Positions 6,654 through 56,665 of a DNA stretch of 64,000 nt are shown piece after piece. The position numbers and the translations under genes are program-made. Position 1 is the first letter of the stretch, and each line of letters opens with the position of its first letter. Origin of the DNA: Epiperipatus broadwayi (lineage: Eukaryota; Animalia; Onychophora); contig JAQFVV010000011.1 of assembly GCA_028023455.1 (NCBI GenBank), positions 1,116,001 through 1,180,000 on the forward strand, given 5' to 3'. Under the pieces are notes generated by a model, which saw only the letters and a program-made list of their open reading frames with translations, made no database searches and was not told where the DNA came from.

Positions 6654-6712
6654 AAACAGGCAAAACTCTCTACATGTATTGCCATTCAACATAAGAAATG
6701 GTGATCATGTGA
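6654..6712. mobile_element. Family B minimal fold-back insertion (59 bp, no ribozyme core)
   Basis: Antisense arm aaacaggcaaaactctc... joined to the sense tail cataagaaatggtgatcatgtga. 13-bp TSD TATTTTGATATTA at 6641-6653 and 6713-6725. Confidence 0.75.
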
Positions 6713-32951: not shown

Positions 32952-33176
32952 AACCCATTTCAGTGCAAATAAGAGTAATCAATAGTTGCAAAAAGGTTTG
33001 TGCATAAAATCCCCATCTAGTGCCTAGTCATTCAATATCCCCAGACTAATTTCTAGCTTGTGGCCATCATCAGTGAGGAGCCTTGGATCTGAGAGCACTG
33101 CTGTATGGAGAGTTTTGCCTCTGTTGTTGCTTGATAAAGCATAAGAAATGATGATCATGTGATGTTTAGTGGTTTA
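32952..33176. mobile_element. Family B fold-back insertion with hammerhead on the minus strand
   Basis: Minus strand: CUCCUCA CUGAUGA UGGC CACAA GCUA GAAA UUAG UC^UGGGGA (core 33067-33073, cleavage at 33044). TSD ATTRTTAAATATAAA at 32937-32951 and 33177-33191. Confidence 0.85.
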
Positions 33177-34837
33177 ATTATTAAATATAAAGGATGGAAT
33201 TGCTTCCTTTGCATAAAATGCTGGTAATATAAATTATGATTTAGTTAGGTATAGTAATTTTTTTTTAAAAAAAAAAACAAATTAATTTTTTTTTTGTTTG
33301 TTTTTTCAATTATAAATTTGACAGCATTTCAGACAAATGTAAGTTTTTTTAATTGATTGTGAATTTGATATGCGGCAGCCTTAAGGACAAACATGTATAC
33401 ATTCATATTGATTATATATAGATTAATATTCAATTTTTTTTTCCATATGGGGTGGACAGTTTATGTAAGAATTTACAGATATAGTCTGGAGTTTACTTGA
33501 TTTATAGTATCAAATGTAATCAACAAATATTACTCTTCAATTTACTTGAAAGACGATTATGAATCTCTATTTTACAATAGCTTTTCATCCATACTGAATA
33601 AGGCAACATTCTGGAAGCTATGCAGATAATTTCTGAATTAGGTAAGCATATTTTTGATAAGGGCAGGCAATCCATGCTAGAACTGGAGAAAAAAACTCAT
33701 TACTTCTGGATGCTACACTGATGATGACAAAAAGGAAGATATACTTTAGGATGCCTTAGCCAGATATATAGATCAAGTTAAAATCACATGCTTGGCTAGT
33801 CATTGTTGCAATGTCGATATATTAGACTGAATTGATTAATATATTCACATAGTCAATAGACAATACAGAAATTGCACTTTTTGTCTAACAATTTAGAATA
33901 TTTTGAGGTTTATTTTTAATAATAAATTGCTATAATTTTTTCTACTTTGTTCCATTATTTTGATGCAAATTATATTTGTTTTTCTTTCCGCTTTCTTGTA
34001 TAGTTTTATTACATCCTGTCTAAAATGCTTTCCTAAAACATGTTTTCTTTAATTTATGTTATTCAGGCTACATGCGCAGAATGTTCATATTAAAAACTTT
34101 TATCCTATGGTTAGTTTTAATCATCTTTTGTTTATTTCAACAGCAATTTTAATTGCTTCTAGTTTATTTATTCCGAAAACAATTAAAGTCGACCTATCAA
34201 ATTATTACACAAACTTCAGAGTGTGATATTTATGTTCACATAATTTATGGGTTAATTAATAGTTACCAAATTAAATTTGATCTTTCAAAATATTACACGC
34301 GCGATAAACGCCCTTACATATATATTTGCATAATTTAGGATAAACTTGTTTAAATAGAAAATCTTTAAAAATTGTTATCATAAATTAGTATTAATTTAAA
34401 CAGTCTAAATCTTTAAATCTAGATATTTAACATTACAACGTATAATTAAAATTAAAACTACAAATTAAAGCTATTTGTATTTCCAAGCCCCCTTCCCTCG
34501 AATTTAATCAGAAAGTCAATTTTTCAATTTGCAAAGTACATTAATTGATTTTCCTAATTCATTATTTTCATTTATTTTACTGAAATAAATGGCTATTTCA
34601 ACTCTACCAGAATATATGTCTAAATATATATACTTTACATTATTTAATTAAACAATGATTTTTTTGGGTTTTTAATCATTTTATTTATTACTTTTTTTTC
34701 CTCATATGAAATAATATTGATATGATTATTCAAAGTTAGATTAATTTTCTAATTTATTATTATTTCTCAACATAAATTAACCTGCACATATCTATCTACC
34801 TCGTGATTGGATTCACGGTCATTACAATACATATGTA

Positions 34838-48859: not shown

Positions 48860-49656
48860 TTAAAATAGGCAAAACTCTCCATACAGTAGTGCCACTCAGT
48901 GCAAGCCAGAATAATCAATGGATGCAAAAAGCTTTGTGCATAAAATACCTATCTAATGCTTATTCATTCAATATTCCCATACTAGTTTCAAGCTTGTGGC
49001 TTTCATCAGTGAAAAGCATTGGATCTGATAACACTGCACTTAGATCTTAGAATCTAATGCAACCCTCCAGCAGCCACCTTTTATCTCTACTTAACTACAA
49101 AACTATTAGTCTAAAATTGAAAACAATATTTTTAATCCAAGCTCATTAGCTTATATAGTCATATAAGTCTGAACTCAGTTCAATGCCCATACATTTTGGT
49201 GCCTTTTGTTCTTTAATAACCACAGCCACCATTATCTTATTAGGCAGGATTAGTGTTAAACCACTAAGCATTACATGATCACCATTTCTTATGCTCGCTC
49301 AAGTTGTTAAAACAGGCAAAATTCTCCATACACCCAGTGCAACAGAATAATCAATGAAATGCAAGAGGTTTGTGCATAAAATTACTATCTAGTGCTTACT
49401 TATCCAGTATCTCCAGACTTGTTTCTAGCTTGTGGCTTTCATCAGCGCAGAGCATCAGTGAGGAGCACAGATGAAAACCACATGCTAGGAACTAGTCTGA
49501 GGATATTGGATGAGTAGGCACTAGATAAGGATTTTATGCATGAGATTTTATGCACAATCTTCTTGCATCTATTAATTATTCTGGCTTGCACTGAGTGTAT
49601 GGAGAGTTTTGCCTGTTGTAACAGCTTGAGTGAGCATAAGAAATGGTGATCATGTG
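48860..49656. mobile_element. Family B composite: minus-strand tandem with two hammerheads (436-nt spacing) plus inverted sense arm
   Basis: Cores at 49003-49009 and 49439-49445, predicted cleavage at 48980 (GUA) and 49416 (GUC). Inverted arm 49460-49656. 13-bp TSD ACATATGAGAAAG at 48847-48859 and 49657-49669. Confidence 0.85.
48965..49026 (-). ncRNA. Type I hammerhead ribozyme, best-paired family B copy
   Basis: UUUUCA CUGAUGA AAGC CACAA GCUU GAAA CUAG UA^UGGGAA. Intact core, fully paired 4-bp helix II, palindromic CUAG helix III. Confidence 0.8.
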
Positions 49657-50934: not shown

Positions 50935-51149
50935 TGCCATCATCTAGTCTAATTGGTTAAAGTGTCACCTTAAATTCAACAATCACAAATCTAAAAGTCC
51001 AGGTTCGATTTCCATGCTAAAGGCCAACAACACCTGAAGAAGAAAGACGAACACACTCGAAACGTTGTTATATATTAATCCATGTTCTATTATTAACAGT
51101 TGAATGTATTTGTAATTTTAAATAAAGGCTCAATTTTTCTAAAGACATT
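50935..51149 (+). mobile_element. tRNA-headed SINE with hammerhead-like tail (family C)
   Basis: A-box TAGTCTAATTGG, B-box GGTTCGATTTCC (~51002), then CAACAC CTGAAGA AG...CTC GAAAC GTTGTT. Cleavage triplet apparently deleted. Confidence 0.6.
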
Positions 51150-51163
51150 AACATTTAATATTA

Positions 51164-51828
51164 AGCCAATAAACATCCTATGACCACCACCTCTTATGCT
51201 TGTGTATTAGATCCTAAGATCTAGGCGCAGTGCTCTCAGATCCAAGGCACCTCACTGATGAAGGCCACAAGCCAGAAACTAGTCTGGGGATATTGGATGA
51301 GTAGGCACTAGATGGGGATTTTATGCACAAGCCTTCTGGCATCCATTGATTACTCTAGCTTGCTGTGTGTGGCAATACGTATAGTGAGTTTTGCCTGTTT
51401 TAACAACAGTTATACACAAACATAAGAGGTGGTGGTCATTTTATGTTTATTGGCTTAAAACCAATACTGCCTAATAGGATAGTGATGGCTATGGACACCA
51501 AAATATATGGGTACTGAACTGGGTTCAGATCCATATGACTATATAAGCTAATGGGCTTGGATTGAAAATATTAAGGTGTTTTCAGTTTAAGACTCTTAAA
51601 TGGAGATAAAAGTGTTGCTGGAGGGTTGCATTAGATCCTAAGATCTAGGTGCAGTGCTCTCAGATCCAAGGCTCCTCACTGACGAAGGCCACAAGCCAGA
51701 AACTAGTCTGAGGATAATGGATGAGTAAGCACTAGATGGGGATTTTATGCACAAGCCTTCTGGCATCCATTGATTACTCTAGCTTGCTGTGTGTGGCAAT
51801 ACGTATAGTGAGTTTTGCCTGTTTTAAC
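51164..51828 (+). mobile_element. Family B head-to-tail dimer (424-nt unit) with two intact-core hammerheads
   Basis: Cores CTGATGA 51255-51261 and CTGACGA 51679-51685. GUC cleavage at 51284 and 51708. Short inverted tail 51164-51206. 14-bp TSD AACATTTAATATTA at 51150-51163 and 51829-51842. Confidence 0.9.
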
Positions 51829-53309
51829 AACATTTAATATTATTAGATGATGGAAATATCCAGCATATAATTGCTACTAAAACACCATCATCAAAAATCT
51901 TCAGACATACAATGTGTGTGTGTGTGTGTGTGTGTATACTGTAATAATATTTATATGTCCTTTCAAACTGAAAAAAAAACTATCCATGCTGAAAAATATT
52001 ATACCAGAATTGTGATTTATCAATTACAGATTGGAAAAAAGACAATTCAAAAAATGAAGGATTGTCTATAATATATATTTCAATGGTAATGAATTTGGGA
52101 TCAATGAAAGTAGATAGATGGTGATCACAAAAATGGCGCATGAGTAAACAATCGATCAGTTTTAACTTTCGTTATATAAATAAGAGAACAACAAAAATTG
52201 AATGACTGAAATTTTTATTTCAAAGCCTTGTATGAGTTTTTAATGTAAAATTTGAAATTCATCAGGGTAATGAGTCCTCAGTCATGGTCGTAAGAAAAAA
52301 GCACAGATAAATCAAACTTTTCAGAAAGTAACGTCATATTGATTTTTAAATTCTTTTCTTCTTTTGAAAAAAAAACCATAAGATGAGTAATACATGCATC
52401 TCTCAGAAATAAACTGCTAATAGGCTGGTTGTGTTTTAATTTTAAAATAGAAAAGCATCAACTACTGAAGAATAACTATAAATATAGATTGTCAAACCTT
52501 AAAAAATACTTATTCGCATTTTAAGGTGAAGTCGAAAAATTGATTCACAGCTTTTAAAAACTTAATAACTCTAAGAATTTAAATTACTTGAGTAATGAGT
52601 TGAGTCATTCATTGTGAAAACTGTAAATTTAATTATCTGGAACATTTTTTCTAAAAAGTTTTTTTTATTTAAAAACAACAACATTATACTATACTAAAGT
52701 TAGAATGAAAAGCGTTAAATGACAAATAAGTTAATTTTCAAAGTAATTTCTGTACTTAATTAAACAAAATGATTCATAAGTAATTAAAACTAAGTACCAA
52801 TTTTTTAAAATGCGACTTATTTCTAAAAATCTTTAAAAAGTAAAGTTTATAAAAATAGATAAATTAATATAACAAAACATTAACTTTATTAATTGTATAA
52901 TTAATTACATGACCCTATAGCAAATTGGATATTAGAGTTCCACTCATTAGACTAGACAAGAAAAATTTTGCTAGTTTAACATGAGAATCAACTAAACTAT
53001 CCAGGTTTATTGACTTTTAAAAAATTAGATGATTATAAACAAAGTTTAAATTTTTTTTTTGTATAGGGATCATATATATATATAACCATTAGAAATCAGT
53101 CAACACTTAGACAATCCTAATATAGATAACAATCAAGAATTTCAAACTGTTGTCAAGGCAACCTCCTTTTAGCCATAAAGGTGGACTATATATATATTAA
53201 TTTGGTAAAGTATGTTCAAATTGAAGATCAAAGACGTTTATAAATTAGCGCGCATATAAAAAATCAGAGGTATACATATGTGAATATAGTACAGACTATT
53301 TAAGGTTGT

Positions 53310-53966: not shown

Positions 53967-54694
53967 ACAGGCAAAACTCACTATATATATATATATTGCC
54001 ACACGCAGCAAGCTATATATATATAAATGCCTGCAAAACTCACTATATATATATATATTGCCACACGCAGCAAGCTAGAGTAATAATCAATGGATTCCAG
54101 AAGGCTTGTGCATAAAATCCCCGTCTAGTGCCTACTCATCCAATATCCACAGACTAGTTTCTGGCTTATGGCCTTTGTCAGTGAGGAGCTTTCGATCTGA
54201 GAGCACTGCACCTAGGTCTTAGGATCTAATGCAACCCTTCAGCAACCACCTTTTATCTCCATTTAACTACAAAACTATGAGTCTTAAAGTGAAAACCCCT
54301 TAATGTTTTTAATCCAAGCCCATCAGCTTATATAGTCATATGGGTCTGAACCCAGTTTCAGTACCCATACATTTTTGTGTCTTTGGTTAAAAACCATAGC
54401 CACCACTATCCTATTAGGCAGGATTGGTTTTAAGCCAATAAACATCACATGACAAACACCTCTTATGCTTGTGTATAACTGTTGTTAGAACAGGCAAAAC
54501 TCACTATATATATTGCCACACACAGCAAGCTAGAGTAATCAATAGATGCCAGAAGGTTGTGATTTCTGGCATCCATTGATTACTCTAGCTTGCTGTGTGT
54601 GGCAATATATATATATATATAGTGAGTTTTGCCTGTTTTTAACAACAGTTATACACAAGCATAAGAGGTGGTGGTCATGTGATATTTATTGGCT
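53967..54694. mobile_element. Family B fold-back composite nested inside a family A copy
   Basis: More than one unit on the minus strand (core CTGACAA, 54175-54181) plus an inverted sense arm 54560-54694. 14-bp TSD TATCTTAATATAAA at 53953-53966 and 54695-54708, itself family A sequence. Confidence 0.85.
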
Positions 54695-56501: not shown

Positions 56502-56665
56502 TTAGTAATACAGGCAAAACTCTATACATATTGCCACTCAATGCAAGCCATAATAATGGCATCCATTGATTACTCTGGCTTGCACCGAGTGGCAATATGT
56601 ATAGAGAGTTTTGCCTGTATTAATAACAGTTAAGAGCAAGCATAAGAAATAGTGATCATGTGATG
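56502..56665. mobile_element. Family B short fold-back insertion
   Basis: acaggcaaaactct...gcaagcca is inverted against tggcttgcac...gttttgcctgt. 12-bp TSD AATATTGAAAAG at 56490-56501 and 56666-56677. Confidence 0.8.

Follow-up and report, generated by a model that had tools for sequence, protein, structure and literature searches.

A non-autonomous, hammerhead-bearing retroelement family with a Penelope-like insertion footprint in Epiperipatus broadwayi

The 665-bp block at positions 51164-51828 of the 64,000-nucleotide stretch of Epiperipatus broadwayi DNA analysed here (the window) is very probably the product of one retrotransposition of a non-autonomous retrozyme-type element, for which a Penelope-like element (PLE) supplied the integrating reverse transcriptase-endonuclease. 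The PLE machinery is strongly indicated as the mobiliser by an insertion geometry that dispersed copies of the family share with published PLEs. An earlier sequence-only reading had proposed a non-coding, self-processing retroelement family in which every unit bears a minimal type I hammerhead. Our analysis partly supports that proposal, in that the element is non-coding, abundant and equipped with the motif in every unit, and it revises the layout of the block and the way in which the motif may act.

Layout of the insertion

The block comprises a 202-nt partial unit, a full 424-nt unit and a 44-nt inverted piece (Table 1). The sequence-only reading had described it as two head-to-tail copies enclosed by a 14-bp target-site duplication; the duplication stands as an exact repeat and the repeat finder confirmed the 424-nt spacing (direct repeat between 51203-51412 and 51627-51836), but the block holds 1.48 units, not two, and its first 44 nt, which had been missed, are the inverted start of a unit. 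This inversion was also recovered as a 47-nt inverted repeat in which 51161-51207 pairs with 51412-51458 at 91% complementarity. Tandem Repeats Finder reported no repeat at the block because so few units are present. The two copies differ at 6 of the 199 nt that they truly share, with four of the differences being transitions and two of those lying at CpG. Because AACA also forms unit positions 1-4, the true length of the duplication may be anywhere from 10 to 14 bp. The 424-nt unit has a GC content of 42%, compared with 27% for the window, and the region contains no open reading frame that reaches 130 aa. Neither LTRs nor a primer binding site nor a polypurine tract is present, the repeated ends being the partial tandem copy.

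Table 1. Features of the insertion and of its relatives in the window, in window coordinates.
Feature	Position	Strand	Basis
Left target-site duplication copy	51150..51163	.	AACATTTAATATTA, exact 14-nt direct repeat
Inverted arm, tail only; reverse complement of unit ~8-54	51164..51207	-	Inverted repeat and BLAST mapping
5'-truncated upstream unit (unit 223-424), pseudo-LTR-like partial tandem copy with hammerhead copy 1	51203..51404	+	Direct repeat; BLAST mapping, 96.5%
Hammerhead core copy 1: CUGAUGA, helix II A-GGC-CACAA-GCC-A, GAAA, palindromic CUAG, UC	51255..51284	+	Direct reading and regex scan
Full 424-nt unit (unit 1-424; reference unit)	51405..51828	+	BLAST mapping
A-box-like motif TAGGATAGTGG (consensus; unit 71-81)	51475-51485	+	Motif match
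B-box-like motif GGTTCAGACCC (unit 118-128)	51522-51532	+	Motif match
Long imperfect hairpin (unit ~216-364); strands extend helix I, tip is the hammerhead	51620..51768	+	Consensus fold
Hammerhead core copy 2: CUGACGA ... GAAA CUAG UC	51679..51708	+	Direct reading and regex scan
Right target-site duplication copy	51829..51842	.	AACATTTAATATTA, exact 14-nt direct repeat
Same-family duplication-flanked insertions, two-armed with one tail	6654-6712, 32952-33181, 48860-49656, 53967-54694, 56502-56665		

The surroundings of the block are themselves repetitive. The flanks 50960-51163 and 51829-51905 returned 1,644 and 369 first-look candidates in the genome, and the left flank carries a tRNA-type B box (GGTTCGATTTCC, 51002-51013), which together indicate that the element landed within an older SINE-like copy. 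A (GT)n microsatellite occupies 51915-51936, 75 nt downstream of the insertion. Our contig comparison covered 16 runs from ten organisms, in which 11-44% of the sampled words occur, and four were mapped onto the block. Contigs of two runs join 51149 directly to 51841 without the block, and these joints hint at an empty site, though both flanks are repeats. When paralogous empty sites were sought through both flanks, the top-40 match lists of the two flanks shared no locus.

A shared insertion geometry and Penelope-like mobilisation

Mapping 30 loci from the genome search onto the unit revealed that nearly all consist of two arrays facing apart, a minus-strand arm on the left and a plus-strand arm on the right. 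An arm opens with a 5'-truncated unit and continues with 0-5 full units, and arms reach lengths of up to 5.7 units. Ends were mapped in 18 insertions, anchored on exact target duplications of at least 10 bp, and five of these are other copies in the window. PLE insertions leave a recognisable footprint, in which a partial tandem is accompanied by a 5'-truncated copy in inverted orientation and one end bears a 30-40-bp tail (PMC8557442). This footprint was found in 16 of the 18 duplication-flanked insertions, whose outer ends fall at unit 396-426 on one side and at unit 37-58 on the opposite side, leaving a single tail; the copy described here reads -8-54, +223-424, +1-424. The duplications are 10-17 bp long and AT-rich, with a mean of 13 bp at 17% GC against the 27% GC of the window, and duplications resembling that at 51150-51163 flank 16 other insertions. 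Where two arms meet, they overlap by 0-7 nt or are separated by short fillers, and these meeting points are scattered along the unit. Only 1 of 62 arm 5' ends coincides with the predicted hammerhead cut site, with no clustering there, and the insertions thus give no genomic sign that cleaved monomers served as templates.

Units are ~92% identical within one insertion and ~89% identical between insertions, and opposite arms are as alike as units of the same arm. The identity within insertions implies that most copies are old, and the two units of the 51164-51828 copy, being 97% alike, place it as younger than most, yet not recent.

Two further regularities were observed among the sampled loci. 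The 5' truncation points recur at unit 90, 192 and 284-288 above the expectation of a flat spread (loci L003, L004, L006, L007, L010, L013, L014, L020, L021, L024, L025 and L028, and also L026 and L030), and may reflect pause sites of the reverse transcriptase or shared locus ancestry. Three of these loci on different contigs, L020, L024 and L026, have the same plus arm at identical locus positions 1468-1702 and may be instances of a larger composite repeat with an insertion of this family, family B, inside it.

Autonomous PLEs are abundant in this genome, as a query with the C-terminal endonuclease domain returned 143,269 first-look candidates. The abundant PLE family that we sampled (L031:8012-8520, L033-L062) has frames open up to 780 aa and a tandem period of ~2.48 kb, and carries RVT_1 in a 606-aa open stretch, plus a GIY-YIG-like domain at the C terminus. 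Its arm ends form two clusters 25-35 nt apart (L031 8476-8490 and 8512), lying ~70-105 nt downstream of its own hammerhead. This hammerhead has an A3-U8 core, and it shares its build with that of the 424-nt unit in that helix III is A-GCGC-U and helix II has a non-Watson-Crick base. The insertion geometry of the 424-nt family also matches the anole PLE, whose protein cuts and extends both DNA strands in vitro and uses two adjacent internal RNA start sites ~90 nt downstream of the hammerhead cut, with the tail spanning the interval from one site to the other (PMC11167929). A dependence of animal retrozymes on PLEs has been proposed before (PMC7229834; bioRxiv 10.64898/2026.07.22.740005). A comparison of the unit with the 3' region of the sampled PLE family (blastn, word size 7, 30 loci) recovered nested unit copies only and no similarity between the two, and folds around both reverse-transcription start sites, in the unit and in the PLE, were no better than those of shuffled sequences.

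Published PLE biochemistry suggests how the block could have formed. A PLE enzyme would nick both strands of the target and prime cDNA synthesis on each, with either cDNA starting at one of two fixed internal RNA sites and the sequence between those sites becoming the tail. The plus arm would have begun at site 1 (unit 424, the outer end) and copied 1.48 units, while the minus arm would have begun at site 2 (the outer end of 51164-51207) and extended for only ~44 nt by the time the two cDNAs became joined. The template for an arm that exceeds one unit must be a multimeric transcript or a circular RNA, and the predicted hammerhead cutting would free 424-nt monomers, which could be circularised.

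A stricter retrozyme cycle, in which self-cleaved monomers become 424-nt circular RNAs and rolling-circle reverse transcription of these circles produces the multi-unit arms, is possible but in our judgement rather unlikely. Arms of up to 5.7 units inside a single duplication-flanked insertion would follow from such a cycle, but multimeric linear transcripts of existing arrays would explain them equally. The monomer is strongly self-paired, folding at -142.6 kcal/mol against -112 for shuffled sequences (z = -5.7), and in this it resembles published retrozyme circles (PMC7229834). Units within an insertion are somewhat more alike than those between insertions, as a circular template would predict, but at 92% versus 89% this difference is too weak to separate circular from multimeric templates, and the equal likeness of opposite arms and same-arm units does not discriminate between the models.

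The hammerhead motif and its helix II lineages

Each of the two copies carries a complete type I hammerhead core at 51255-51284 and 51679-51708, as the sequence-only reading had held, and both read CTGA(T/C)GA-AGGCCACAAGCCA-GAAA-CTAG-TC, with predicted cuts after the C at 51284 in copy 1 and after the C at 51708 in copy 2. All invariant hammerhead positions (C3-A9, G12-A14, A15.1-U16.1 and C17) are kept in both copies and in the family consensus. In helix I, CCUCA pairs with UG(G/A)GG over 5 bp, and the helix continues through internal loops into AUCCAA/UUGGAU and AGUGCU/AGCACU, so that the long, internally looped helix I described earlier is reproduced in the fold; the topology is type I because this helix is open-ended. 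The minimum-free-energy fold of 51649-51739 forms helices I and II. Within one molecule, helix III amounts to 1-2 pairs (A-U) and a palindromic CUAG loop, whose positions are 94-98% conserved in family copies. Since ACUAGU is its own reverse complement, a 6-bp helix III could arise between two copies, which is the classical double-hammerhead arrangement known for newt, viroid and PLE motifs (PMC4209133).

Helix II consists of three pairs flanked by an A on each side, and its base can be written in two registers, either with A.A at 10.1/11.1 or with G10.1-C11.1 and one extra A on each side. An extra nucleotide after A9 is a known trait of minimal PLE hammerheads, whereas the extra A on the 3' side is not, and the minimal PLE hammerheads described so far retain G10.1-C11.1 and show poor cleavage in vitro (PMC4209133). 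The A.A had previously been noted as a feature of these two copies that might lower activity; it is present in the first register, but it belongs to the family consensus and is not a defect of the two copies. The anole PLE ribozyme needs protein (PMC11167929). For the motif described here, whose helix III is minimal, cleavage is predicted to require either protein help or a second copy, the two copies pairing through the ACUAGU of each. Cofolding of the dimer was uninformative, as the representation used puts the trans helix III in a knot with helix I. A search with Rfam hammerhead covariance models, which had been proposed as a check, gave no match to the motif at the gathering score or at E <= 10, on either 1 kb or 101 nt, probably because these models expect a real helix III.

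Contigs of other organisms show a variant within this motif. At 51704, in the CUAG of copy 2, C in place of T is frequent in runs X1, X3 and X9 and accounts for most of the depth in X9, a change that would break the CUAG palindrome unless a second change accompanies it.

Counted on both strands of the 5.6-Gb genome (18,588 contigs), the exact pattern CTGANGA-N13-GAAACTAGTH occurs in at least 105,178 copies, compared with 7 for the reversed control, and the motif is therefore not a product of chance. If each of these copies sits in a 424-nt unit, the family and its relatives would make up ~0.8% of the genome. With the rest of the motif held fixed, helix II reads GGC/GCC in 38,401 copies and AGC/GCU, changed on both sides, in 6,669 copies, compared with 1,350 copies for the intermediate AGC/GCC (A.C) and 969 for GGC/GCU (G.U). 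The double change is thus 5-7 times commoner than either intermediate, with an odds ratio of ~200, and on these counts it represents one or a few compensated changes in lineages that were later amplified. A further 7,130 copies carry U for the A that follows A9, replacing A.A at the helix II base with U-A; this replacement needs a transversion and 7,130 copies are far too many for random decay, so that a third lineage must have been amplified with U-A. The full core is kept in all three lineages (G-C, A-U and U-A). Within the window, the copy at 48860-49656 belongs to the compensated A-U (AGC/GCU) lineage.

A conserved hairpin module

The hammerhead forms the tip of a long imperfect hairpin whose consensus fold contains 48 pairs, with 94% of cells paired across 71 copies, and this hairpin is the best-conserved part of the unit. 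The sequence-only reading had named as a refuting outcome that core positions be no better conserved than their flanks. Across 144 local alignments, agreement with the consensus is ~96% at non-CpG core positions and ~90% elsewhere in the unit, so that the core does exceed its flanks, but the whole unit 200-375 stretch is elevated as well, and the comparison is a weak test that says little because inserted copies decay neutrally. For the same reason, and because the copies are too similar, covariation in the local alignment of 71 copies did not rise above that of shuffles (94.3% of cells paired versus 94.1%). Thousands of short contigs from four organisms map 10-100 times deeper on unit ~212-383 than on unit 1-200, and loose contig ends at 51616 and 51363 coincide with the borders of the hairpin module.

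The element and its mobilisation could be as proposed above while the hammerhead no longer cuts, the hairpin being kept for recognition by the PLE protein near the start sites and no monomeric or circular RNA being formed; we regard this as unlikely. A hammerhead with A.A at the base of a 3-bp helix II, a minimal helix III and no match to the Rfam models may be inactive, but axolotl retrozyme hammerheads with U.U at the helix II base have been described (PMC7229834), the helix II change is compensated, and the helix III loop has kept the palindrome required by ribozymes of the dimer type (PMC4209133). Conservation spans the whole ~150-nt hairpin and not the core alone, in keeping with a structure recognised by the PLE protein, but no invariant core nucleotide has been lost in any of the three lineages that amplified separately. 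The arm 5' ends do ignore the cut site, in keeping with the anole PLE, whose hammerhead mutants insert normally in vitro and yield no reads that end at the cut site (PMC11167929).

We hold it doubtful that the hairpin serves two purposes at once, as a handle by which the PLE protein engages a non-homologous RNA and as a protein-assisted, dimer-only ribozyme with an A.A helix II, in a unit that may have an internal Pol III promoter. The A-box-like and B-box-like motifs of the unit lie 36 nt apart, and such a pair occurred in 15 of 3000 shuffles, making them a weak lead for a putative internal Pol III promoter. ARAGORN and Rfam found no tRNA in the unit region, and a long Pol III transcript is made less likely by the TTTT runs within the unit. 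With such a promoter, the unit would be a self-transcribing Pol III retrozyme.

An ordinary satellite or local DNA duplication with a chance hammerhead-like string would suit the mere 1.5 units here and the shortness of the motif, but is scarcely credible given dispersed copies on many contigs with their own target duplications and the same arm geometry, the 105,178 motif copies against 7 in the control, and the contigs in two runs that join 51149 to 51841 without the block.

Discussion

The preferred reading, a retrozyme-type unit integrated by PLE enzymes, places the family among known systems. The 424-nt family fits the definition of animal non-LTR retrozymes (PMC7229834) and is also a non-autonomous PLE dependant, and we consider it a real new member of this class of animal 'non-LTR retrozymes' and non-autonomous PLEs. 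The closest described kind, as our comparison supports, are the animal non-LTR retrozymes of Cervera & de la Pena 2020 (PMC7229834), which include axolotl HHR_Amex1 and HHR_Amex2, newt satellite 2, and mussel and coral repeats. Shared with these are short, non-coding, low-GC head-to-tail units with a type I hammerhead in each, duplications longer than 4 bp and a copy number of the order of 10^5. Helix III is very weak (one pair and a palindromic tetraloop), a trait of Amex1 and newt too, and as in Amex2 there is a mismatch at the helix II base, which is U.U in Amex2 and A.A here. The family differs in its 424-nt unit, slightly above the published 170-400 nt, and in consisting mostly of dispersed two-armed insertions of 1-6 units rather than long arrays.

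With PLEs and their derivatives (Craig et al. 2021, PMC8557442; Frangieh et al. 2024, PMC11167929; Li, Clavereau & Pollet 2026, preprint) the family shares the pseudo-LTR partial tandem, the inverted 5'-truncated arm, the single tail, the AT-rich target and the two fixed 3' ends, as well as a hammerhead ~70-120 nt upstream of the reverse-transcription start sites. Unlike PLEs, its 424-nt unit has no open reading frame, and its tail measures 37-58 nt rather than 30-40 nt. Xenopus retrozymes match pseudo-LTRs, whereas the unit described here has no detectable homology to the 3' region of the sampled PLE. The motif resembles the minimal PLE hammerheads of Cervera & de la Pena 2014 (PMC4209133) in its type I topology, its palindromic 15.2-16.2/loop 3, its predicted dimer action and the extra or unpaired nucleotide after A9; in those hammerheads helix II has 6-8 bp and helix I 4-5 bp, whereas the motif here combines a helix II of 3 bp with a long, bulged helix I and an extra A on the 3' side of helix II too. 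Features particular to this family are a 3-bp helix II with an A.A or doubly bulged base, together with its natural U-A and A-U variants, the conserved helix I hairpin module, the 37-58-nt tail and the lack of homology to the sampled PLE.

Plant LTR retrozymes (PMC4918200) are likewise non-autonomous and hammerhead-bearing with repeated ends. Assignment to that class was rejected, as none of its traits applies (type III hammerhead, ~350-bp true LTRs, primer binding site and polypurine tract, 4-bp duplication, Gypsy mobilisation); the present block has a type I topology, a 14-bp duplication and repeated ends formed by a partial tandem copy.

The link between animal retrozymes and PLEs has so far come mainly from co-occurrence and pseudo-LTR homology. 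In the present case a retrozyme-type family with at least 10^5 motif copies itself shows the PLE integration footprint, including priming on both strands, two fixed start sites and a single tail, and does so despite sharing no detectable sequence with the sampled PLE family. Ribozyme scans based on Rfam miss the hammerheads of this 424-nt family. The family is a good natural substrate for defining which RNA features are recognised by PLE enzymes and whether a hammerhead is required, and its three natural helix II variants, A.A with G-C, A.A with A-U, and U-A, offer a ready comparison of cleavage.
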